A stretch of DNA of 64,000 nucleotides from Mobula hypostoma. Taxonomy: Eukaryota. Of the stretch, positions 1,436 to 28,400 are shown piece after piece. Positions within the stretch are counted from its first letter, which is position 1, and each line of letters starts with the position of its first letter. The DNA lies in contig NC_086125.1 of NCBI RefSeq assembly GCF_963921235.1, forward strand, positions 26,908,001 through 26,972,000, read 5' to 3'. The notes beneath the pieces are model-generated. The model was not told the origin of the DNA and ran no database searches. It worked only from the letters and a program-made list of their open reading frames with translations. Position numbers and translations under genes: made by a program.

Positions 1436-4400
1436 GTGAGTTCATTACTGTGCATACGAGGTCTTGATAATTACAAATCATTCACCTCTATTTTAGCAGA
1501 TGAAATTTCAAACACCAATATGTTAATTTTACTAAATCTAGGTATATGTATATATAAAACCATTGGCAGTATGAGTTAGTTTAAAGAAAAATGTAATTTT
1601 TCCCCACTTTTAAGTATACTCCGTTTTCCTTTGTGTGAATGACATTGCCTGTGTGATACAGTGAGCTGCAGGTGAGAGGAAAGCTATTCGCGAGTCCTGA
1701 TGAAGGCTCAGCCCAGAACATCGACTGTTTATTCCCCTCCATAGATACTGCCTGACCCACAGAGTTCCTCCAGTATTTCATGTGCAAGTTTCCAACATCT
1801 GTAGAATCTCTTGTGTTTATTCTTGTTCATTAGCTGTTTTTCTCAATGAGTTTACAACATTAATCTTTCAATCTTGTGTGTGATCCAAAGTGTTGTTTCT
1901 GCTCTATAGTTACATTGCTGAGTATTTTAAATTTGCAATCATCATTTCTCTAGGGAGGACTACATCTTTTGAATTTACACTGTTAACGGGTCTATCGTTG
2001 GAAGTCATAAAGCTGAATAAAATCTTGTGTAGTTTGTACAGAATCCAACCAAAAGACCACTTGGCATAGGAGCAGAATTAGGCCATTCAGCCCATTGAGT
2101 CTGTTCCATTATTCAATCATGGCTGACTTATAAGATCCTTCTCATATTCTTTAACAAGTCAACATGTTTTGTATTAATGTATTGTCAATGTGTTTTCAAT
2201 TGACATATTGAGGTGTGTGGTAATATAGTAGTTACCTAACTAGCAGCCAGAACTATGGCATATTGATTCAGAGGTGTAAGTTTGGATTCAACCAGGACAG
2301 CTTTGGGATTTAAATTTGGGTAATTACGTAAACCCAGAATTAAAATAAGATGAATTAGTCTCAGTAAAACTATGAGACTGTTGGATTTTCATTAAAAAAC
2401 TGTCTGGTTTTCAAGAGGAGAGATGTGTTATCCTTACCCATTCTGGTCCATGTGTGACCAGTGAGGTTGACCCTTAACTGAAAATTATCTGACATCCACC
2501 ATGTCAACATATTTTAAGAAATATGTTTTAGAAGTTATTTTGAGGAATTGTTTTAGTTAGTTTAAAGATTTAAACAATTTGTTGGATGATTCAGTCTTGG
2601 GTTTTTGTTTAGTTCCCCAATGAATGGAACACAATTGTGTCCTTTGAAATATGATGACAGTTGCATGTAGGGGTATTTTTCTGTGACCTAGTTGAGGTTC
2701 TGACTACGGAGTACCACACGACATTTCAGTCACATGGTAACACACTCACTTCTGAATGTCAGGATCAAAGGTCCACACTGGGCCAACAATACAAGGGTCA
2801 AAGCAGAACAACCAAATACTAGGTTAGCTTCTTGAGAGAAAGGCTGCTGGATGATATTCCAGGCAACTGGACAATATTCCAATAAAATTATTAATCGAGT
2901 GCTTAATCCTTTATTCCTTGGAGTAGGAGGCTGAGGGGGTGACCTTATAGATCAAGAGGAATATAAAAGGGGTGAATGTGCACAATCTTTTTTCCCAGGG
3001 AAGGGAACTAAAACTGGAGGGTACAGGTTTAAGGTAAGAAAGAACATGTTCAAAAGGGACTTGAGGGGCAATTTCTTCACGCAGAGGGTGGTGTGTTTAC
3101 AGAACAAGTTGCTAGTGGAAATGCTTGAAGAAGTGCATTTGGATTTGGATTTGGGTAAGTGTGTGGATAGGAGAGGTTTAGAAGGATATGGGTCAAAGGC
3201 AGGCAACTGGTTCCAGCTTGGCGGGCACTATGACAGGTATGGGCAAGTTGAGCCAAAGGCCCGTTTCCGTGTTGTAGGAGCAAAAGGTTACCCATTCTAG
3301 CTGCTGGACCTGGAGACGGGAATATCACAAACTGAAGTGGAAGTTAGCCCTAGAAAATTATTGACTGGTTCTCAGTCATATCCAACAATGAAAGTGGAAC
3401 CTGTGTGGTAGAGTTTTTAAAGTGGAAAAGCTATTATACTGGGATAGTTCCATTCTCTTGACCTTGGAAGTCCAGGTCCACTGGTACAAGTAATTGCCAC
3501 AACTGGAGTCTTCCTTGCTCGTGGTGGATGACCACAACTTCTTCTACGCTTTGTCATGTCCTTCATGCAGAGCCACCTTCCCAGCTGTTGGATCTTACTG
3601 TTGGTCTCATTCACCCAGCTGTTGGATCTTACTGTTGGTCTCATTCACCCAGCTGTTGGATCTTACTGTTGGTCTCATTCACCCAGCTGTTGGATCTTAC
3701 TGTTGGTCTCATTCACCCAGCTGTTGGATCTTACTGTTGGTCTCATTTACTGTCTGTTGGAGCTGACTTTGCTTGCTAGGACAGGCATGTCCCTATCTCT
3801 CTTATGGGACTCTCCGCACCTGTCGAAACATTGTACCAGGGTGTTTTTAATTCAAAGTGCAAGCAGCATACATGTATGTCACCATATATTACAATGATAT
3901 TCATTTTCTTGTAGAAATTCACATGAAATTAATGAAATACGATAGAATTTATGAAAAACTATGAAGACTGACCAATAACCAAGTGCAAAAGAAAACAAAT
4001 CATACAAATAATAAAACAAGTACATAAATAATAGTGAGAACATGAGTTGTAGAGTCCTTGAGAGCGAGTCTGTAGATTGTAGTCAGATCAGAGTTGAGGT
4101 GAGTGAAGTTATCCATGCCAGTTCAAGAGGCTGATGGTTGTAGAGTAATAACTATATTTCCAGATCCCCATCACCCTTGCTTTGACAGCACAGCAACAAC
4201 CTGCATTTACATTGTGCCTGAGTAAACCATAAACCTTAACCACAAGAGATTTTGCCGTTGCTGGGCATCCAGAGTAACACACACACACACACACAAAATA
4301 CTGGAGAAACTCAGCCGCTTAGCCAGTGTCTGTGGAGAGGAATAAACAGTGGAGATTTTGGGCTGAGATCCTTCTTAAAGCTTAAATGCTTATTGCCACA

Positions 4401-10400: not shown

Positions 10401-13400
10401 TGTCAATTATCCATGGAAGAGATTGCCAACAACACAACACGTCACATCTGTTCCCTTCCAATGATGGAGGTCTCCTTGTTTACCCCACTGGACATTGAGG
10501 TGTTGCTAAACAGAAGTGTTGTCATGAGCAGAAAGGACATGTATATTAACCACATGGGTGAGTGCATTTGCAGAGTCAGAACCAGCTTTATTATTGCTGA
10601 CTTAGATGATGTGAAATGTGTTGTTTTGCATCAGCAGTACAGTATAAAGAATAAAATTGCTGTAAGTTACAAGAATAAATAATGCAGAAAACCTGGGTTC
10701 CTGGACTTGTCAGAGATTTGATGGCAGAGATGGAGAAATTATTCCTAAAACATTGACTGTGTGTTATCAGGCTCCTGCACCCGCTCCTTGATAGTCGTAA
10801 TGAGAAGAGAGCATGTCCTGGACAAGGAGGGTCCTGAATGCTGGATGCTGCCTTTCTGAGGCACCAATTCTTGAATAGGTGCTCGGTGGGGAGGGTTGTG
10901 CCAGTGATGGAGATGGAGACCACATCCAGCTGCAGCCTCATGCAATCCTGTGCATTGGTGCCTCCATACCAGACAGTGGTGCAACAAGTCTAAGGCCTAC
11001 TCTAAGGTTTAGTTAATTTAACCTTATCTAAGATCAATCTAACTCTTCCCCCCTATATACCCTCCATTTTTCTAGTTATCATCCATGTGCCTATCTAAGG
11101 GTTTCCTGAATATTCCTAATGTATCTGCCTCTACCAGGGCGAATTCTGTGCCTCTGTTTATACAGGCCAGTCGTGCATGTCCTCCTGCACACCACTGAGG
11201 AGATCTCTTCACTGTCAGAGGTGATGCATTGGACTAGGGTCCTGCCTGTTCTCTTAGATTGGTGTAAAAGACCCCCTTTCTGAAGAAGAACAGGACACTC
11301 CTGATATTTGTTGAACGATCAATATCACGGACAGGAAGTTCTGATCATTGGCTTTCTTCTTCCCTCAGTTGTCTTGGATCCGCCGTCCAATGTGACCGTT
11401 CGGCCAACCGGGAAACCTGGGCAGCTTCACGTCAAGTGGTCAGCACCTCCGTTTAAATATCTAGACAATTCCTTAATGTACGAAGTCAACTTCTCTTCCG
11501 TTGGATCCAACATACAGCAGGTAGTGAAACGTACAGTTCTTTCAACATGCTCACACTGCACACTCAAGGCAATCACCAACTCGAGATCTTGGTTTGTTCT
11601 CACACTTGGATATTACTGCTCTGTGGTTCAGTGTACGTACAGGTTAATTTACTTGTTTATCACTTGTACGTTGAAACGCATCGTTCGCATCAACAACCAA
11701 CACACCTAAGGACGTGCTGGGGGCAGCCCGCAAATGTTGCCACACATTCTGCTGCCAACATACAGTGCCCAGCAGATCAACACAGAACCACAACAAAACA
11801 GAACAGAACAAGCAACAAAACTGCAGCAAAACAAGCCCTGTCCTTCCCTACCACCCACTCACCCACACACACACACACACGGAGAGTCCTCCAACCCCCG
11901 GACAGCTTTCCCAGCCTCCAGCGCACTCACAAATAACGGGCCTCCAATTTCCCCATCGGACTCCAGACTCACTGACCCAGGCTTTCAGTCATCACGCTTC
12001 GACTTCCCGATTTTCAATTGAAAGTGTGTGAGTGTGTGTGAGTTTCTCTCTGTGTGAAGGTATGCTTGTTTTTCTGTGTGAGTGTATGTGTGACCATGGG
12101 TGAGGTTGTGTGTATTTTTGCATTCTGTTATTGTTTTACCTTATTCTGCACAATGTACTGTGTATTGATTTGATCTGTATGAACAGTATGCAAGGCAAGT
12201 ATTTCATTGTGTCTCAGTACATGCAATAATAATAGACCAATTTCAATTCCTATTCCAAGTGCAAAGTCTCTCTCTCTCTCCTCTTCTCTGCTCTCCCTGC
12301 TCTTCCCCCTCTCCCCCCTCTCCCTGCTCTCACCCCTCTCCTCTNNNNNNNNNNNNNNNNNNNNNNNNNNNNNNNNNNNNNNNNNNNNNNNNNNNNNNNN
12401 NNNNNNNNNNNNNNNNNNNNNNNNNNNNNNNNNNNNNNNNNNNNNNNNNNNNNNNNNNNNNNNNNNNNNNNNNNNNNNNNNNNNNACCCCCTGCCTGATC
12501 GAACGTTGTGAACCTGGTCATTAAGTGATACACATCTCAGTAACATTCCCCTGTCTGTGTAGGTTAACACTGTCAAAGGGAAAACGGAGTGTGTCATTCT
12601 GAAGCTGAAATCACAGACGGAATACGTTATCAGTATCCGTGCGAAGCCGGATGGAGTCTCCATGGACGGATACTGGACCACGTGGTCTAAGCCGGTGTCT
12701 GCTTTCACTGATTCAGGTATTGCAATCATCTCAGGGCACCTGACATGTTCTTCTGGTTGGCAGAGGGCAAGGTGAAGGGGTTCAGTTACTGTTGAAAACT
12801 TGTTAGAGACAAAGAGCATCCCTGTTTCTTGCCCGGAAGTCTCCTGGAGCGGGTCAAGTCTCAGGACTTGACTTTATCCATTAGTGTGGAGGAGATTTCA
12901 CTGAACCACCCAGAAATTCCAACTGCAAGTATGTTTTCAAGGGGATCCTAGATGTCCACCAGCGAGAGAGTACAGGGTTCAATGAAGAAGGGTGGGAATC
13001 CATTTGTTCACACCAAAGACACCAGCAGGGGCTAGATGGGCTGAATGGCATGTTTCTGCATTGAATCTTCCATTGGAACATGAGAAACATCACGTCTTGA
13101 GTATTGTCAAGCATGAAATTCCAAGTGGGAATGGATTTGGGAGCTGATGGATGAGTTTTTATTGGAGTTTTAGTTTTCTTTACACTTGCTTATACAGTCA
13201 GTGGCCACTTTACTAGGTGCCTCCTGTAGCTGAAAGAGTGGTCACTGAGTGAATGCTGAGGTCTTCTGCTGCTGTAGCCCATCCACTTCAAGGTTCGATG
13301 TGTTGTGTATTCAGAGATGCTCTTGCGCACATCCCTGTTGTAACACTTGATTATTTGACTTGCTGTCACCTTCCCGTCAGCTTGAACAAGTCTGGCCATT

Positions 13401-16400
13401 CCCCTCTGACCTTTCTCATCAACAAGGCATTTCACCCACAGAACTGCCCGTTCGCTGGCTGTGTTTTGTTCTTTGCACTGCTCTCTGCAAACACAAGCAA
13501 GCATGCTTACCAGCTAACAGAACACAAGAAAGCAAGCGTGTCTGTATGCCTTTATGCATTGAGTTGCTGCCACATGATTGGCTGATTAGATATTTGTATT
13601 AATAAGCTGGTGTACCTAATAAAGTGGCCACTGACTGTATGTTTGTATAACTACTATTAGTACAAATGTGAGTGTCTGCGTGAACATGTTTACGAATATC
13701 CCTGTGTGGTTGAGTGCATTTTTGTGTTCTGTTATTTAGTTTCTGTTTCTGTTATTTAGTTTCTATTTCTGTTGTTTACCTTATTTAGCTTTTCATTTAC
13801 CTACTTATTTCGAGATGCAGTGTGGATCTCGCCATTGCAGCCAATGAACTGCACCACACACCACATCCCCTATCTAACCCTAGCCTGATCACAGGACAAT
13901 TTACAATGACCAATTAACCTACTAACCAGTATGTCTTTGAACTGAGGGAGGAGACAAGAGCACCAGAGGGAAATCCAGTGCATGCAGGAGGACATACAAA
14001 GTTCTTACAGGAGACACCGGAATTGAATTCTGAACTCTGGAATGCCCAAGCTGTACCAGCTTCACACCAATCACTACACTACAGTGGTGCCTCAGTGCTT
14101 TGACGTTGAACCTTGTTCCACTTCAATGCACTGTGTGAGATTCGATCTGTATAAAATTTAGTACAATTGGCTCTGTACTTCTGTGTTGTGATGAAGTGTT
14201 GTGGCAGTGTAACACAGACAAAGTTATTCCATTAGTTGCCATGCCTGTCTCAGAAAGGCAGCGTCCATTATTAAGGACCTCCAACACCCAGGGCATGCCC
14301 TTTTCTCACTGTTACCATCAGGTAGGAGATACAGAAGCCTGAAGGCACACACTCAGCGATTCAGGAACAGCTTCTTCCCCTCTGCCATCCGATTCCTAAA
14401 TGGACATTGAAGTTTTGGACACTAGCTCACTTTTTTAATGTACAGTATTTCTGCTTTTGCACATTTTAAAAAATCTCTTCAATACATGTAATTGATTTAC
14501 TTGTTTATTTATTATTATGTTTACTATCCATTGTATTGAACTGCTGCTGCTAAGTTAACAAATTTCACATCAGATGCTGGTGATTCTGATTCTGATTCCA
14601 TCAGAAGACCACCTTATCTCTGGCCAGTTTAGGGCTAGGTTTATGGTATAAAAGGTAAAAGGGTTAACATAATGAGGAGAGTTTGATGGTTCTGGACCTG
14701 TACTCACTGGGACTTAGAAAAATGAGGGGAAATCTCTATGAAACCTATTGAATATTGAAAGGCCTAGATAAAATAGATGTGGAGAGGAAGTTATCAATTA
14801 TACAACAGATAACTGGATGATGTAAACTGAACAAATTAAGCAATTCTTCGAAGCCAATAAATTAGCCAATGAAAAGTGAGTGCCAGTGTTACTGAGAGCA
14901 ATATGTGGAAAAGCATTCTTTGCTTAGAAGCTTAAATGCGACAACCAAACCAGCCGAAATGAGCTTTGCTGATATCGTGAACAGAATGCAGGGACAGTTA
15001 GAATCTAAGTAATTGTTCATTGTAGAGTGCTTTAGGTCTCATAAGTGGAATCAAAAGGCACGGGAATCCATTTCAGCTTACAAAGCTGAATTGAAGAAAT
15101 TGCCTGAGCATTGTCGGTTCAGTGATAGGCTTAATGGTGCACTGAGAGATTGTTTAGTTTATGGAATCTTAGAAGAAGAAAGCATTCAAAAACAGTTTCT
15201 AACTGAAGCACAACTCACACTTAAAAGAGCAGTTGAAATCGCTGTATAAATGGAAGCGGCCAGCGGTGCAATTGAGTGTCTGTCAGGAATGAAAGTGATC
15301 ATGAACAAAATTGCAATGACTAAACAGAAACCTGCCTGGCTGAACAAATTGCATTACGTTTGTGGCAGAGGCTCGCATACACCAGACCAACGCAGGTTTA
15401 AAGGCAAAACTTGCGGAAAATGTAACAAAGTAGAACACACACAAAGAGTATGTAGGGCAGACAAACTAAATGGGTTGCACAGAGAAGAGAAAACGATGCA
15501 AAGTCCAGTTACAGTTTCACAAAGAGCACCTATCTGTATGCTGTTGATGAAAAATCTGATAATGATGAGAGTAACGCAGGACTGAGTAGCCTTGAGATTT
15601 ATAATGTGAAAATGAATAATAGACAAACACCAGAAGTGAACAGAAAACTAATTACGATAGAATTGTAGGATGTCTCAGGTGTTTCAGTCATTATACAAAA
15701 TTAGTTTGAAAGGCATTTGAAAGGTACTGAGCTGAAGCCTGCAGATATCCAATTAAGGACTTATACTGGAGAAAAGGTAACTCCAGTGGGATGACTTTTG
15801 TGACGTTGAAATATAACCACCAACAAGCCAAATTGGGCTCGTATGTGGTATAAACAGGAGGGCCGGCATTTTGGGGTTGTGATTGGCTGAGGCAACTACA
15901 ACTTGACTGGAGAACCATCCACCATTTGCATGCCACATCCCCTGCAATGAAGGCAACTGAAAGTGAATTAAGGGTACTGAATAATGCCACAACTATCTCC
16001 ATGGTGTACACCATGAATTGTTCCCCAAAAGAGGACAAACCTCTGTGCCTCTGGTTGGAAAGCATATTGGACCAAGGAAGGGCCATGTTGCAATAGAGTC
16101 GACTGGAAGTGAATTAAGAAAGGTACTGGATGATGCTATAGCAGTGTCCAAGGATGACATTGGAAAACTCAAACATATCAAATGTAAAATAGTGTTAAAT
16201 GAAAATACCACACCCAAGTATTACAAAGCCCATCTAGTTCCTTATACCATCTGTGATGAAGTAACCACAGAGCTAGATTGCATGGAGGCTGAAGGAATTC
16301 TTTACAAGTTTGTGTGAAGCCCATGGGCAGTCCCAGTAGCCAAGAAGAATGGATCTGTCAGGATTTGCGGTGATTTTAAGGTCTGCATCAACCCAGTACT

Positions 16401-19400
16401 GAAAGAAGATCAGTATCCTTTGCCGGGAATAAATCATATCTTTGCAAAACTTTCTGGTAAGAAACACTTCAGCAAAGTCTTTGCTGAGACCTGCCTACAG
16501 ATAGAGATGGAAGAAGATCCCAAAATGGTTCTCACCACATAAATTCACCAAGGATTTAATCACTATAATAAGCTTATTTTTGGAGCAGCATCTGCACCTG
16601 CACGCTGGCAGAAAGCTATGGGCCAGGTGCTGCAAGGCTGCCCAGGCACTCAGTGTTGCCTGGATGACGTCATTGTGAACAGTGAGGACGACGAGGAACA
16701 TCTCCAGAACCTCAAGGCAGTGTTAAAAAAGGATTGGAAGATTATGGGCTCAGGGCATGATGCAACAAGCGTGAATTTCTTAAACCTGGCACTCAACGTC
16801 AGTAAGACAAAAGAGCAGATTGTGGACTACAGGAAGGGTAAGATGAAGGAACACATACCAATCCTAACAGAGGGATCAGAAGTGGAGAGAGTGAGCAGTT
16901 TCAAGTTCCTGGGTGTCAAGATCTCTGAGGATCTAACCTGGTCACAACATATTGATGTAGTCATAAAGAAGGCAAGACAGCGGCTATACTTTATTAGGAG
17001 TTTGAAGCGATTTGGCATGTCAACAAATATGCTTAAAATCTTCTATAGTTGTTTTATATAGAGAGCATTCTGACAGGCTGCATCACTGTCTGGTATGGAG
17101 GGGCTACTGCACAGGACTGAAAGAAGCTGCAGGGGGTTGTAAATCTAGTCAGCTCCATCTTGGGAACTAGTCTACAGAGTATCCAGGACATCTTGAGGGA
17201 GCGGTGTCTCAGAAAGGCAGCGTCCATTAAGGACCTCCAGCAGCCAGGGCATGCCCTTTTCTCACTGTTACCATCAGGTAGGAGATACAAAAGCTTGAAG
17301 GCACACACTCAGCGATTCAGGAACAGCTTCTTCCCCTCTACCATCCAATTCCACTTTGAAGCTTTGGACACTACCTCACTTTTTTAATATACAGTATTTC
17401 TGTTTTTGCTCATTTTTAAATAATCTATTCAATATACGTAATTGATTTACTTGTTTATTTATTATGTTTTATTTATTTTTTTCTCTCTCTGCTAGATTAT
17501 GTATTGCATTGAACTGCTGCTGCTAAGATAAAAAATTTCACGTCACATGCCAGTGATAATAAACCTGATTCTGATTCTGACCTACTGTTCAAAACATCCA
17601 TGCACAAGAATTACACCATTCAAGTAGTGTTGAATGCCCCAAGGTCAAAGGGGGTGTCACAGTTGTCGGCCTGTTTAGGATTTGTCAATTACTCTAACAG
17701 ATTCTAGTCAACCCTGGCTACTGTGCTCCACCCCTTGAACTCATTACTACAGATCGGGAAGAAATGGTGATGGACAAAGCAGTGTGAGGTGGTTTTCAAA
17801 AAGGCAAAAGAAACAGTGATGTCAGATACTGTACTCATACATTATGGTCCACATCAGCCAGTGAAGCTTTCCTGTGATTCCTCGCCTTATAGTATGGGTG
17901 CAGACATGTCACATGTTATGAGTGTTCACATTCCCTTACCGACGCAAAGAAAAAAATACAAACAGATTGACAGAGAGGCCTTGAGTCTAGTTTGGGAATA
18001 AAATGTTTCAACCAGAAGCTGCATGAGAGTGAGATCATTCTCATTAGTGATCACCAAGCACTGGTGTCCATTTTCAATCCACAGGAGCTCCACTAACCGC
18101 AGCAGCATGAGTGCAGAAATGGGCTCTGTTTCGTGGAGGACACAATTGCAAGAACGAATTCAAGAGGACGACTCATCATGGAAATGCTGATCGATTGTCC
18201 TGTTTACCCTTGGAAAAGGAGAATTCATCTCAACTTGAATATGTAACCTAGAGCTCTCCAGTCAATTTCACACACACATTTTTATTTATATATAATATGT
18301 GTGCGTGTGTGCATGTGTGAAATTGACTGGTGAGCTGTAGGTTACATATTTCAGTTGAGATGAATTCCATATTGAGTTGCGGTTCATAGCTAAGCAGGGC
18401 AGAGTATTGTGTATTTAATATTTCAGTAATATTTGAGTTATATTGTAAATATATTGTTTGATTAAGCATTCTTCGTTTCTTTACTGAATTCATTACGGGC
18501 TATACGTAAAAAGTGTGTGAATGGCATACATCATTACACCACCACGTTACATGTCACAAGTATCCCCCAGCTCCCGTGTTTTTCTTTGAATTAGTTTCTG
18601 GAGTTACAGAACATAATAAGCGCAGCAGTGTGGGCCAAAGGGCATGTGTTGTAAAAGCAGAGCACAAGGACACTTCCTTTCTTATTTTGCTGTTCCTGAG
18701 CATCTAATAAAACACATGTATCTGGAAGATTTGCGCCTCCTGGAGGTCCTCTTGGATAACAGCTAACAGAGTTAAACAGTGAACCCTCATATTGTGGGGT
18801 GGGGTTCCCAGAAAACCTTTCACATCACAACTTTCTACAGAGAGAAGTGATTTCATCTGCTCATGTGCCAAGGAATGTAATTTGGAAAAAGAAATTGGCA
18901 CCTTTGAGAGTGAATCTTTATCTAGTATCTCAAAAATTTTGGCTGTGCTTTGTGAACTCTGTGAGGGAGAGTTTCTGTTACCCAGACCGCTGTAATATTG
19001 GCATTGTCTGTAATAACCAAACTCTTCCAACAGAATATCACAGATGCAGCAAAACCTGCATAATTATCTTGAGCACTGATGGGAAGTATCTCATTGAGGG
19101 AACGTAGGCATTGTTCACAACTTACTTATGCCAACTCCCCTACTAGGGCATAGGCCTCTGACAGTAGCTCGTCAGAGCCCCCTGTCCTGGGCCAAAGATT
19201 GATCAGCCCTGTAGCTTCCAATTTCATCACACAACTTCTTACGACTTCTAGACGAAGATCCTTCCTCTCGCAGGGATGTGGTCTTTGGAGCTTCTGTTGG
19301 CTTTTTGTTACTCTGAGTTTTTAGGGGATGGGGTTGCTAGCCCTATACCTAACCCTCCACCTTTCGTAGCTGGGCTTGGAACTGCCTATGGCTGAGTTCA

Positions 19401-22400
19401 TTGTTCACAAGGCTGGTGTTTATTGGCTATCTCTGGATGTTAGCTGGGCCTTCCAAGTTCAGTGTTGGTGATGAGGAGTCACCCACCTGACGTTGGGTTT
19501 GGGTTTGGATGTGGAGTTTAAAATGGAGAAGGTCAAATACTCCCTTCCATGAAGAATATTAGTGACCCTGATGTACTTTGAACTACAATCCAGATGCCAC
19601 CGTGTCGGAGTTATTTATATTATTCCTTACACTCAATGTCAGCAAGACCAAGGAAGTGATGGTGGACTTCAGGAAGGGGAAGTTGGAAGAACACACCAGT
19701 TCTCATTCAGGGGTCAGTGGCGGAAATGGTGAACAGTTTTAAGTTCCGGGGTGGCAACATCTCTGAGGACCTGTCATAGTCCCAACACATTAATACAATC
19801 ACGAAGAAGGCATACCAGTGGTTCTACTGAGGACTTTGAGAAGATTTGCTACATTACCAAAGACCCTTGCAACTAGGGAGGTTTATTGACATGAACTTTG
19901 GTAGAAGGAATAAAAGCATACACTATCTTTTAAGCGGGAGAAAATTCAAAAATCAGAGGTGAAAGTGGACTTGCAAGTCCTTGTGTAGGATTCCCAAAAG
20001 GTTAACTTGCAGGTTGAGTCAGTGGGAAGGAAGGCAAATGCAATGTTAGCATTCATTTTGAGAGGACTAGAACATAACAGCAAGCGTGTGATGCTGAGAT
20101 TTTATAAAGCATTGGTCAGCTTGCACCAGGAGTATTGTGAGAAGTTTTGGGTCCCTGATCTCTGAAAGGATGTGCTGGCATTGGTGAGGGTCCAAGGGAG
20201 GTTCACAAGATTGACTGGCTGGAGTTTAGAAGAATGAGGGGGATCTTACTATCATCAAATATTGAAAGACCTAGAATGAGTGGATCTGAAGAGGATGTTT
20301 CCTATAGTGGGGAAATTCATCACCATGAAGAGCTATGGAGGGCAAGCCATTGGGTATACTTAAGGTGGAGGTTGATAGGTTCTTTATTGGTAATGGTGGG
20401 AAGAAGGCAGGAGATTGGGGTTGAGACGGGTAATAAATCAGCTATGATTGAATGGTGGAGCAGACTTGTTGGAGTGAATGGCCTAATTCATATACATCTT
20501 ATGGTCTTTTCAGGGAAGAGGTACAGGAGCCTGAAGAAACACACTCAATGGTTTAGGAACAATTTCTTTTCCTCCGCTATCAGATTTCTGAATATACCAC
20601 GAACACTACCTCACTTTTTGCTCTCTTTTGCACTACTTATTTTATAAATTATATATTTCTTATTGTAATTGATAGTAATTTTTTATGTATTGCACTGTAA
20701 TGCTGTTGCAAAACAACAAATTTCATGACGTACAGTATGTCAGTGGTAATTAACCCAATTCCCAATTGTGGATTCCAGTATTGTGAGGTGTCCTCGGAAA
20801 GGGTTGGGAAATTCTAAATGAGTGTTCTATTGAAGAAGGTGTCAGAGATTGAGAGGTTGAAAGGAAATTGATTTAAATAAGTCTGCATATGGGTGTTGTG
20901 GGTTATAGAATTGTATTTCTGTCTTTCAGATCTGGATCCCCTGATCTTGGGCCTGACATCCGTTCTCATCCTGATCACCGCTCTGCTGTTATTAACCATC
21001 ATCCTCACCCGCCGCAGGTACACCCTTGACTGGCTGATACAGTGGAAAATGTTTCTATTTGTTTGTTGCCCATCTTAAATCTGAAGAGGTTAGACAATGT
21101 ATCAGCATGTAGCTGGATTTACAGCAATACACACAAAATGTTGGAGGAACTCAGCAGGTCAGGCAGCATCTATGGAGAGGAATATGCACAGAACATGACA
21201 GCACAGTACAGGCCCTTCAGCCCACAACATTGTGCTGACCTACCCTAAGATCGATATAACTCTTCCCTCCTATATAGCCCTCCATTTTTCTATCTTCCAT
21301 GTGCCTATCTAAGAGTTTTTAAACATCCATAATGCATCTGCCTCCAGCACCACCCCTGGTAACGCGTTCCACACATCCACCTCTCTCTGTATAAAGAACT
21401 CAACACTGACATCCAGGACTGGAAAGGAAGGGCGAAGAAGTCAGAATAAGAATGTTGAGGGAGAGGGAAAAATACCAGCCGGCAGATGAAAGGTGAAAAC
21501 AGGTGAGAGGGAAGGTGGGCGGGTGGAATCCAATTTAAAATAATTGCATTAAGCTCGCAATGTCTTCATCACTGAGTCTTATTAGGTAGTCGTCAATCCC
21601 AGAGGATCATGGGTCTGTGCCTCTGGTGGACTGTGTCCTCTCCAGGGTGCAAGCCTGGGTGGAAAGATTTGAAGAACCGGCTGTTGCCCATGCAATGGGT
21701 TCTCTTCTCCATGTCACTGATGTAGTCCCAGGGAAGGGCAAGCGCCAATACAACCTGGCATCAGTGTCGTCACTGGGTCTAAATCCTGGAATCCCCTTCC
21801 TAGCAGTACAGAGGAAGTACTTTCACCAGAAGTGATTCTAGAATGAGGCATTCTGAAGACAATTCATTATTCTTTATTTTAGATGTTATTGAACCTATGA
21901 ATCTATCAAAGATAGTGGACATTCTGTTCTGCCTTACACGATCTCACTACTCTGGTCCACATCCAGCCCTCCACAGATGATGTGGTTTGATGGTCCTTTC
22001 ACAACTGTCTTGAGATAAGGAGGCTGAGGGGAAACGTAAAAGATTAGCTCATGGGTTAGTCTTGCCTCTGAGTTAGAATGTGGTTAGTTCAGGTTCGAAA
22101 GCAAATAATCTCAGCTGCTGCAGTCTTTCAGCGAATCTAGTCCCTGAAGTCACTAGGGTAACTCTCTCTATGCTCTTGGCCTGGCACTGAGGCTTAGCAG
22201 TTGGCGTAATGCTTTACAGTGCCAGAAATCAGGGTTTGATTCCCACAGCTGTCTATATAGTGTTTGTGTGTTCTCCCAGAGAGTTTCTTCCCAGTCACTG
22301 ACACAGACTACGTATTTCACTGTATGTTTTGATGTCCCCTCATATGACAAATGAAGCTAATCTTTCTTTCCTACTCTTTGAGGCTTTCAGATCTGTGTTA

Positions 22401-25400: not shown

Positions 25401-28400
25401 CAGAGATATCCAAAGAGGCATACTTATTGCTGAGGGGAATAGCCTCAGGGGAACTGCTTACTCCCCTTACTTCTGGTGGTCACCTATGTATTATCTGCAG
25501 CCTGCTCTCTGGGTGTGACCAGCTCCGTAAATGTGTCATCTTTGATGTTTTCAGCCTCCCAGATGGCCCTGAGTACATTCAGTTCCAGCTCCAGTTCCCT
25601 TGTCTTGTCAGTCAGGAGCCGAAGTTGGGTGAACTTCCTGCAGATATTGTTATCAGGGAGACTGTTAGTTACTCTGAAATCCCGCATTTCATAGGAGGAG
25701 CGTTCCACTATGTTAACTTCATCCTGCCTGCACTTGTTGTACCTCAAACTTCTTAAGCTTAAGTTATAGCCTATGTCTGTTCTCGCCCAAGCCCGACCAC
25801 TCAAACACTGGCCCGCTCTAACAATGGCCACTCTACTTACACCTCACTTCTTTTTATCAGCCCCTGTCGAGTGCCAAAAAGATCATGATGATTGGCATGC
25901 ATCAGACATGTAATGTTGGTGCTAGAAGGATGGCGACACTTGCGGGTTACCCCAGCTCATCCTTGGACTGTGTAGGTTGTGGATGCAAATGACACATTTC
26001 ACTGTATGTTTCGATGTATATGTAACAATAAAGCTAATCATATTTTCAAAAGTAGAATTAAATATTATTGAGGAGGGAGTGTTGAACGAGCTCACAGAGA
26101 CTGTGATTGTATCTTTTCACTGCTGGGTCTGCCCTTCAGGTGAGGGAGCGCACAGAAAACAGTAAAAATGTTTGATGAACTAGTGAAATGTTTACCACAG
26201 TTTAATACTCAGCAACAGTCCAATGAGATATTTATCAGGAGTGCTGAGTGTGCAGGGCCCTTAGCATTGTTGAGGATCCTTTCTGTCCATCCCACATCAG
26301 GCAGGAGGTACCATAGCATTAGGACAAGGGCTGTTAGGATGGGAAACTGCTTCTTCCCCCAGGTCATGAGACTATTGAATTTCCTGCTATCTCCCAGGTC
26401 TCATCACTTATGAAGCGCCAGTAGAATTACATAGTTTATTTTTTAACTTATGTCATAAATGCACCTTATGCTAATTGTCAGTCTTCTGTTATTATTTGCT
26501 CATTTGTTTGTGGTAATATTCCTTTATGTGTTGTGCACCTTGGTTTGCCTGAACGTTGCTACATTTGGTGGTACTTGGTATATGGCTGAATGACAGTAAA
26601 CTTGAACTTGAATTTAACCAGATCCTTTTCACCTACAGGATGATAAAGGAGACAGTCTGGCCGCTGATTCCTTCCCCAGAGAACATGTTTGATGGACTTT
26701 TCACTGTACACCATGGAAATTTCCAGGTAAATGTCTTATGACCTCTGTACTGCACTGCACTGTGAATGCCTTAAACAACTTTTGATAATGTTGTTTACAT
26801 TGTAAATACATGCTGGTATTTATGTATTTATGCACATTTTATTCCATATCAATACTTGTCAATTTATCTTTATATAATTCTTTATAATTATTTAAACCTT
26901 CATTCCTGCACCATCTCTTTAGCCACATATTAAACTGCATTAACTTCCTGTTTTTTTATTTCACTAACATGTGGCACAGGTTTTGATGTACATGTGATAA
27001 ATCTGAATGAATCTGAGTTACACCTGGTGGCCTCTTTATTAGGCCCTCATGCTCATTAATGCAAATATCTAATCAGCCAATCACATAACAGCAACTTAAT
27101 GCATAAAGGTCAAGAGGTTCTGTTGTTATTCAGACCAAACATCAGAATGGGAAGAAGTGTGATCTAAGTTACTTTGACTGTTGAATGATTGCTGGTGCCA
27201 GATGGGGTGGTATGAGTATCTCAACAATTGTTGTTCTCTAGGGATCTTCACGCACACAGTCTCTAGAGTTTACAGAGAATGGTGTGATAAACAAAATACA
27301 TCCAGTTCTGTGCGCTAAAACGTCTTGCTGATGAGAGAGCTCAGAGGAGAATGGCGGGCTGGTGACACAGGTCTATCGTACTCTGTGTTAGAATCTCATA
27401 ATCTTTGACAGCTCAAATAACTTCCAGTAAACAATTCCACTTGGACAGTTTCTGCTTGTAACTACAATTGTTTAACTATGACAATAAAGTTATTCATCCC
27501 CACTTCACCTTCTCCAGAGACAGTCGTGTAGCCAACTGCTTTCTTCATTGTAGGCTGAAAAGGAAGAGGAGAGAGAGACAGTCAGTCGAAAAGAGTAGTG
27601 GGAAGGGGTAGTGCAAGAACTGGCAGGGGTTAGGTAGATCCAGGAGAGGCAGTCATCTGGATCCACATGTCACCTGTCAGCTCTTGCTCCACCTCTTCCC
27701 TCTTATCTTTCCGAGTGTCTCTCTCCCTTCTTCCTTTCCAGCCCAAAATGAAGGGGCCTAACCTAAAACCTCGACTGTCCATTTCCCTTCATTGGTGCTG
27801 CCTGATGCACCGAGTTCCTCCAGCATTTTTTGTGCTGCTCCACGTTCCAGCGTCGGCAGATTCTTGGGTTTTCAGCTGACTATGTTGCTCAGTAGCACTG
27901 GCCGAGTTAGAGATTTATACAGTTCCAGTTAGATCTTCTTGCCCCCGTCCACTTTTCTCGTGGATAGCCCTCCTTTTTACAACTGCATTTTCTCTAAGAC
28001 AATGTTCTACATACTGTTATCGCTTTTCCTTTGTACTGCCTCGATGCAAATGATCCGCGAGGATGACATGCTCTACACTGTACCTCAGTACATGTGAGTA
28101 TATTAAACCAATTACAGTTACAACATTTGAGGTGAAGATCCTTCACGAAAACTGGAAATTGAGAAAACATTAGTTTTAAATTGCCGCACCTGACAGCATC
28201 TTTCAGGAAAGACACTTCTCTGTGGAAAAAACAACTTGCTTTGCACACCTTTGAATTTTTCCCCTCTCTACTTAAGCGCATGTACTCAAGTATTACACGC
28301 AAAATGCTTGAAGAACTCAGCAGGTCAGGCAACATCGATGGAGAGGAAATGGAAAGGAATAAGTAGTCAATGTTTCGGGCTGAGACCCTTCATCAGGAGC

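Follow-up and report, generated by a model that had tools for sequence, protein, structure and literature searches.

Known twister-headed retroelements and the element in EPOR

Perere-3 of Schistosoma mansoni is a long interspersed element (LINE) of the RTE clade that carries a 'T-variant' twister ribozyme at its 5' end. The twister variants of Perere-3 cut at U^AA in vitro as well as in reporter constructs and are co-transcribed with the element; its target-site duplications (TSDs) adjoin the AA and supply the 5' strand of stem P1, and GTAA repeats stand at the 3' boundary (Liu et al. 2021, NAR, PMC8501958). Truncated twisters have also been stated to be conserved at the 5' end of RTE-superfamily retrotransposons, in work cited as in preparation (de la Pena et al. 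2020, Cells, PMC7761336). Here we describe a 278-bp element of this kind in Mobula hypostoma, found in a stretch of 64,000 nucleotides (contig NC_086125.1, positions 26,908,001 to 26,972,000 of the forward strand; hereafter the window), in which it lies antisense in intron 5 of EPOR. With a probability of about 0.8, the element is an old and inactive copy of a short non-autonomous retroposon family, which arose by internal deletion of a Perere-3-type RTE LINE and has its 5' end at the predicted twister cleavage site.

Like Perere-3, the element has a head that starts with AA at the site of cleavage, together with a TSD that abuts this AA. The 16-nt stretch AAAGGAGGAGGGUUGG is identical between Perere-3 and the majority of the element's family, and the tail units are the same repeat, (GTAA)n being equal to (TAAG)n. 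Unlike Perere-3, the element is devoid of the endonuclease and reverse-transcriptase open reading frame (ORF), of which approximately 2.9 kb is deleted, and hence represents a non-autonomous derivative. Moreover, the P3 hairpin is absent and the P4-to-AAA strand is instead extended by 3 nt, the host is a vertebrate, and the copy is decayed. The truncated twisters of the RTE superfamily resemble the element in having no P1 5' strand of their own, in standing at an RTE 5' end, and in their proposed 5' processing from upstream transcripts; the published statement on them is given without sequences, hosts or non-autonomous derivatives (PMC7761336). The ribozymes like that of hepatitis delta virus at the 5' end of R2, RTE, baggins and L1Tc are alike in that self-cleavage releases a promoterless non-LTR (long terminal repeat) element from a host co-transcript. 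However, they belong to another ribozyme class, for which the present element gave no Rfam match. Short internally deleted LINE derivatives and RTE-tailed short interspersed elements (SINEs) are non-coding and keep the LINE 3' end for the reverse transcriptase of a partner. In contrast to classical SINEs, whose head derives from RNA polymerase III (Pol III) transcripts, the element has as its head the LINE's own ribozyme-bearing 5' untranslated region (UTR).

The element occupies window positions 19121-19398 on the minus strand, between perfect 12-bp direct repeats (cattgttcacaa on the plus strand) that have no third occurrence in the window. Element positions are counted on the minus strand from 19398. 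In this direction the element begins AACUCAGCC, runs through GCAGUUCCAAGCCCAG and GGAGGGUU to GGGCUAGCAACCCCAUCCCCUAAAAA, and ends with GCCCAGGACAGG, GGCCUAUGCCC and UAAGUAAG. The TSD copy ends at 19399 and the AAC begins at 19398, directly adjacent. A sequence-only reading of the window had reported the 278-bp element, its perfect TSD and its antisense position in EPOR intron 5; its coordinates and the minus-strand letters it quoted agree with ours. A blastn search with the element revealed no second copy in the window. The features, from the 5' end of the element to its 3' end, are as follows.

19399-19410, no strand: TSD copy adjoining the element 5' end (AAC), a perfect 12-bp repeat of 19109-19120
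19348-19398, minus strand: twister-derived head (positions 1-51), by covariance model R1, 39.5 bits, E value 1.4e-9
19324-19351, minus strand: conserved hairpin directly 3' of the twister (positions 48-75), overlapping the P1 3' strand, by covariation
19200-19323, minus strand: rest of the RTE 5' UTR and remnant of the ORF start (positions 76-199), by alignment to the full-length relative L015
19193-19199, minus strand: internal-deletion junction, where the L015 alignments stop at position 199 and restart at 207
19129-19192, minus strand: 3' module, what is left of the final ~22 RTE ORF codons, positions 207-278 aligning to L015 nt 3103-3175
19121-19128, minus strand: terminal (TAAG)2 repeat, with a repeat unit equal to the (GTAA)n tail of Perere-3
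19109-19120, no strand: TSD copy at the element 3' end, a perfect 12-bp repeat of 19399-19410

The element head is collinear with intact twister heads

Intact heads were collected by a metagenome scan whose pattern combined the L4 loop with the 16-nt stretch named above, which is common to the family majority and the published S. mansoni twisters. The pattern matched 82 loci, whose heads begin AACUCCGCC and occur in two forms, with and without the P3 hairpin. The P3-less heads are collinear with element positions 1-51 without any gap, and the likeness runs on into the same downstream hairpin. R1 was built from 19 distinct P3-less intact heads of other organisms, with this genome excluded. When R1 was run over the whole window, the head listed above was recovered over model positions 1-51, from the first base of the element, and the runner-up scored 10.9 bits. 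The scan pattern predetermines the 3' half of R1, whereas it leaves the 5' 19 nt unconstrained, and the element agrees with R1 at 14 of these 19. With blastn, the element head (positions 1-81) matched 28 loci with E values down to 7e-15 (L017), and the tail (positions 207-278) matched L004 and L009 at 75% identity (E value 3e-7). Together with a Schistosoma rodhaini locus described below, these results support the placement of head and tail among twister-bearing RTE elements of the Perere-3 type, as had been proposed from the letters of this copy.

Written as a 3' cleavage product, the head runs AA, P2 5' strand, GC, P4, L4 (GUUCCAAGC), AAA, P2 3' strand, GAGGG and P1 3' strand (UUAGG). The core nucleotides are complete and in order, namely A1A2, G7C8 (L2), C20-C25 (L4 CCAAGC), A35-37 and G42-G46 (GAGGG); one L4 base is U instead of C, which is likewise the case in the published Sma-1-119. 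By inspection, the T2 pseudoknot could form between G7C8 and G24C25, and the T1 pseudoknot could form with one G-U pair between U19C20C21 and G44-46. A single match to the twister 3'-half motif CCAAGC-N6-16-AAANNNNGAGGG was found in the window, inside the element, and none in 100 shuffles. An Rfam search of 1.5 kb around the element (E value up to 10) returned no twister match. On a 91-nt stretch, twister-P1 (RF03160) ranked first among 4227 families, with its full model covered, the U^AA of the model falling on G|AA at the first base of the element. The same family matched all of the 12 metagenome loci searched, at 38-68 bits (E values from 7e-5 to 2e-13). P4 in relatives of the element is CCGG/CCGG, with U-A covariation in L019 and L066.

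The 5' boundary recurs outside this genome. There are 24 distinct flanks before AACTCYGCC in the metagenome loci, with no sequence in common, and TSDs abut AAC also in L004 (11 bp, one mismatch), L084 (11 bp) and L067.

A conserved hairpin follows the twister

The general form of the hairpin is UGGG-C-GUGGGG-CUAGCAA-CCCCAC-CCCG, and this copy reads UAGG-UAUAGGG-CUAGCAA-CCCCAU-CCCC, with 7 of 10 pairs kept. In an alignment of 39 loci and the window (A3, 40 sequences), 81% of the hairpin cells are paired, compared to 41-61% with slid partners. The double-sided changes number 23, and none of 500 shuffles attained the observed value. The outer pairs involve the UGG of the twister P1 3' strand. The hairpin may thus compete with, or replace, the pairing of P1 to the insertion-site flank, a suggestion that qualifies the earlier claim that the P1 5' strand must come from the insertion site.

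Full-length relatives define the deletion junction

Three relatives of 3.2 kb (L015, L085 and L004) have this head, a ~1000-aa endonuclease and reverse-transcriptase ORF, and a tail ending in (TAAG)n. In L015 the head is at nt 1, the 5' UTR measures 162 nt, and the ORF starts at 163. Its 1003-aa product contains Exo_endo_phos, RVT_1 and DUF6451 and ends ..GGCCUAUGCCCC..GGCGUAAG, with (TAAG)n next and no 3' UTR between. L085, a full-length Logan contig, is 72% identical to element positions 1-177 (E value 4.5e-19) and also matches positions 207-278 (E value 1e-7). The Perere-3-type locus of S. rodhaini (L084) scored 75.6 bits with Rfam twister-P1, over the gathering score, approximately 108 nt upstream of an ORF that starts AUGACGUCUCAUGAU, which is a predicted Perere-3 AUG in Liu et al. 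2021 (PMC8501958). L084 has an 11-bp TSD abutting AAC and a (GTAA)n tail, and it shares with the element the head (blastn E value 3e-11) as well as a homologous post-twister hairpin and 3' end. The runs of the terminal TAAG unit are longer in L015, L085 and L084 than in the element.

Element positions 1-199 align to L015 nt 1-214, and relative to L015 the element misses approximately 2.9 kb of the ORF. Translated in the frame of L015, the tail gives AQDRGL*RATVRGLCPS.., where L015 itself has AEDRGAWRTLVGGLCPS... The statement that the element has no ORF is essentially right. A 64-codon open frame (19129-19320, minus strand) is present, and it was considered as a coding remnant in that frame and rejected: there were no word-sharing candidates, and a search of 1.84 billion representatives gave as sole match a tandem-repeat pseudo-protein (P0001). 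Judged from the alignment, it is a chance frame spanning the deletion junction.

The nearest Atlas clusters to the L015 ORF are auto-named 'Craniofacial development protein 2', a name that reflects an RTE-1/BovB-derived endonuclease. The L015 ORF is 60-74% identical to proteins of several Schistosoma species (67-70% for these), Littorina, Batillaria, Branchiostoma, reedfish, lungfish, loaches and a goby. For a ~1000-aa ORF compared across phyla such identity is unusually high, which suggests horizontal transfer. Two protein matches (P0002-P0121 set) are labelled as bacterial metagenome-assembled genomes (Cetobacterium and Kangiellaceae) and are probably host DNA misbinned.

Two kinds of divergent relatives were also observed. 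A full-length loach element of the same lineage (L083, GCA_030506205.2; 900-1200 and 4120-4220) has no twister upstream of the ORF and ends in (GAT)n, not (TAAG)n, but retains a hairpin-like GGGCCAACAACCC and an AAAAAAC stretch; the 5' module of this RTE lineage therefore seems exchangeable. Furthermore, two metagenome contigs of other organisms, L067 (~180 bp, with its own TSD) and L009 (~290 bp), are independent short internal-deletion copies with different breakpoints, from which it follows that mini-elements arise repeatedly in the lineage.

The short form is repeated and its copies end at the predicted cleavage site

Contigs of four public runs were placed on 19050-19470 at 80% likeness. 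Each DNA run contributed 1,610-2,348 contigs on the element at this likeness or above. The depth was back to single copy outside 19125-19409, in agreement with the TSD bounds, and summed depth peaked at 19245-19305, the most repeated part of the element, far above head or tail. Many contigs connect tail and core but skip varied lengths in between, so the family consists of relatives with different deletions. The junction at 19193-19199 is crossed by several distinct contigs of other copies, 80-90% alike, in three runs (X5 records 18-20, X13 records 10-12 and X6 records 26-27), indicating that the short form itself was amplified.

The family-majority letters of the head are U at position 6, A at position 40 (AAAGGAGGAGGG) and G at position 49 (UUGGG); at position 28, G accounts for about one third of the depth. 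The letters at positions 6 and 40 restore P2. A second placement, on the head alone, retained few contigs, biased to the copy's own subfamily, and gave no full consensus of positions 7-27. In this placement the depth dropped sharply past 19398. Loose ends were most frequent at this position in runs from four organisms (8, 2, 3 and 7 contigs), and the flanks there are unrelated; the remaining loose ends are recognisable heads too diverged to align.

In all four runs the loose-end consensus has T directly before AAC, as do 12 of the 24 distinct metagenome flanks, compared to a T background of 37%. This is too weak to call and may be a weak target preference or noise. A 1,855-nt contig of depth 365 (run X1 record 4, from a run whose RNA type is only guessed) represents another family copy over 19253-19398; its similarity ends exactly at 19398, with ..GUCAACAU|AAC upstream, and it could be an expressed copy.

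Proposed cycle

The retained 5' UTR of the LINE comprises a P3-less type-P1 twister, the conserved hairpin, the remaining UTR and a remnant of the ORF start, and the retained 3' end is the last ~75 nt, with C-terminal codons and the (TAAG)n tail. By homology, we infer that the cycle of Perere-3 holds for this family, with the enzyme acting in trans. A source copy would be transcribed by read-through from an upstream host promoter, and its twister, if it self-cleaves as the homologous one of Perere-3 does, would cut just 5' of AA to yield an RNA starting with AAC. An RTE endonuclease and reverse transcriptase would then recognise the common 3' end in trans and insert the RNA by target-primed reverse transcription. 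The outcome of such a cycle would be an 11-12-bp TSD abutting AAC.

Weighing the explanations

Several observations weigh against the reading of the element as a short RTE derivative with a twister-made 5' end. The twister-P1 score of this copy is 14.8 bits, compared to a gathering score of 67.2 (E value 0.66). The minimum-free-energy fold of the head is not a twister and is no better than shuffles (z -0.77); the tail does not surpass its shuffles either (z -0.80). Paired in the register of the 19 intact relatives, this copy keeps 3 of the 8 standard P2 and P4 pairs, a count that would be 5 of 8 in Rfam's P4 register. In P2, C3-G41 and C5-G39 are kept, and U4xU40 and A6xG38 are mismatched (2 of 4 pairs). 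P4 is GCAG/CCAG against the consensus CCGG/CCGG, with G17-C26 alone kept (1 of 4 pairs), and two of its changes are CpG-to-CpA. These lesions bear out the earlier impression that the copy is dead. Judged from sequence comparison, this copy is by itself a poor twister, and homology settles its origin. Moreover, the copies nearest to this one also have CAG at positions 15-17, so P4 may have been weakened already in its immediate source. RNA ends are not visible in contigs, and a fixed 5' end alone would suit a transcription start as well. In addition, the summed depth over the tail is flat, where an abundant partner LINE would make it increase toward the 3' end, so an abundant partner with a closely similar 3' end is not evident. 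A Pfam search of the ten longest ORFs in the window gave no RTE, the single find being a LINE C-terminal ALKBH8_N domain at 16618-17061, and an autonomous partner was not recovered from this genome. Of the earlier description as a bipartite non-autonomous SINE-like family, the repeated family, the end of similarity at AAC and the shared junction are in place, whereas the partner was not found in this genome.

It would be consistent with some of these points that the head came from an RTE twister but that the ribozyme no longer sets the 5' end, the AAC being inherited or due to transcription initiation or other processing, and the head serving translation or recognition by the reverse transcriptase. 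The subfamily nearest to this copy seems to share the weak P4, yet its copies still end at 19398; part of the P1 3' strand takes part in the conserved hairpin; and the cleaved head supports translation according to Liu et al. (PMC8501958). Nevertheless, the boundary equals the cleavage site to the base, not only in this family but also in 24 or more independent insertions of other organisms, P2 and the core nucleotides are intact in the wider family majority, and no promoter feature was identified. We therefore regard this account as unlikely. It is much less probable still that a full-length RTE was inserted here and then cut to 278 bp by deletion in place, with no mobile short family. The lineage does repeatedly yield internal deletions, as the differing breakpoints of L009 and L067 illustrate, but the distinct contigs of other copies that cross the junction at 19193-19199 mean that the short form was copied. 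An ordinary Pol III SINE, with a head from tRNA, 5S or 7SL and a twister likeness by chance, could draw on GUUCCAAGCC, which is loosely like a B box. However, ARAGORN detected no tRNA, Rfam gave no tRNA, 5S or 7SL match at an E value of 10 or below and ranked twister-P1 as the top family, and the head is collinear with 19 intact twister heads without a gap. This possibility is effectively refuted by the ARAGORN, Rfam and R1 results, and the earlier inference of a 5' end not made by a Pol III promoter agrees with them.

Insertion site and neighbouring sequences

Three exons on the plus strand of the window were assigned to EPOR, one near 12674 with a WSXWS-like WTTWS (..YWTTWSKPV..), one near 20944 encoding SDLDPLILGL...RRR, and one at 26553-26738 encoding WPLIPSPENMFDGLF. 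We take them to be the WSXWS-type, transmembrane and Box1 exons, respectively, by comparison with human EPOR. Since EPOR exons on the plus strand stand on either side of the element and the element is on the minus strand, it lies antisense in intron 5. The orthologous insertion is present in organism B, with 4-5 differences in 421 nt, and in organism D, where a contig with 4 differences spans 19362-19460. It follows that the insertion is old. Because of the antisense orientation, no sense RNA of the element is expected from EPOR transcription, and the copy is a relic, dead and without evident effect on EPOR.

Elsewhere in the window, at 15985-17384 on the plus strand, there is a fragment of a Ty3/gypsy-like reverse transcriptase and, after it, the C-terminal portion of another LINE (Pfam ALKBH8_N, E value 4e-9); neither is related to the element. 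A run of 141 N (12345-12485) lies just upstream of the WSXWS-type exon.

Meaning of the element

To our knowledge, twister ribozymes are widespread and have one documented eukaryotic role, the 5' processing of Perere-3 in schistosomes. The kind of element described here, a twister-headed RTE, is thus already known; what is new is the vertebrate host, the amplified short non-coding derivative and the cross-phylum relatives, on none of which did our literature search find a paper for twister-headed RTE elements. Nor did the search find publications that deal with twister ribozymes in sharks or in other vertebrate RTEs, or any following up the statement on truncated RTE twisters (PMC7761336).

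The head, UTR and tail architecture of Perere-3 is now seen in a vertebrate genome, in the form of a repeated short non-coding derivative, and close full-length relatives are present in many other animals. These natural sequences can be used to ask if, in SINE-like elements, cleavage by a ribozyme can stand in for a 5' end set by a promoter. Furthermore, a search model of the R1 type is usable to annotate such elements, and the post-twister hairpin is a candidate second structured domain. A wider picture can be offered only tentatively, and we hold it to be rather doubtful: vertebrate genomes may contain abundant promoterless SINE-like mini-RTEs with a twister-made 5' end, whose younger copies still cleave; the hairpin may free cleavage from the flank or make it irreversible; and the lineage may have spread horizontally among aquatic animals. 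If this were true, the 60-74% identity of Perere-3 lineage proteins over flatworms, snails, amphioxus and fishes would reflect horizontal transfer.

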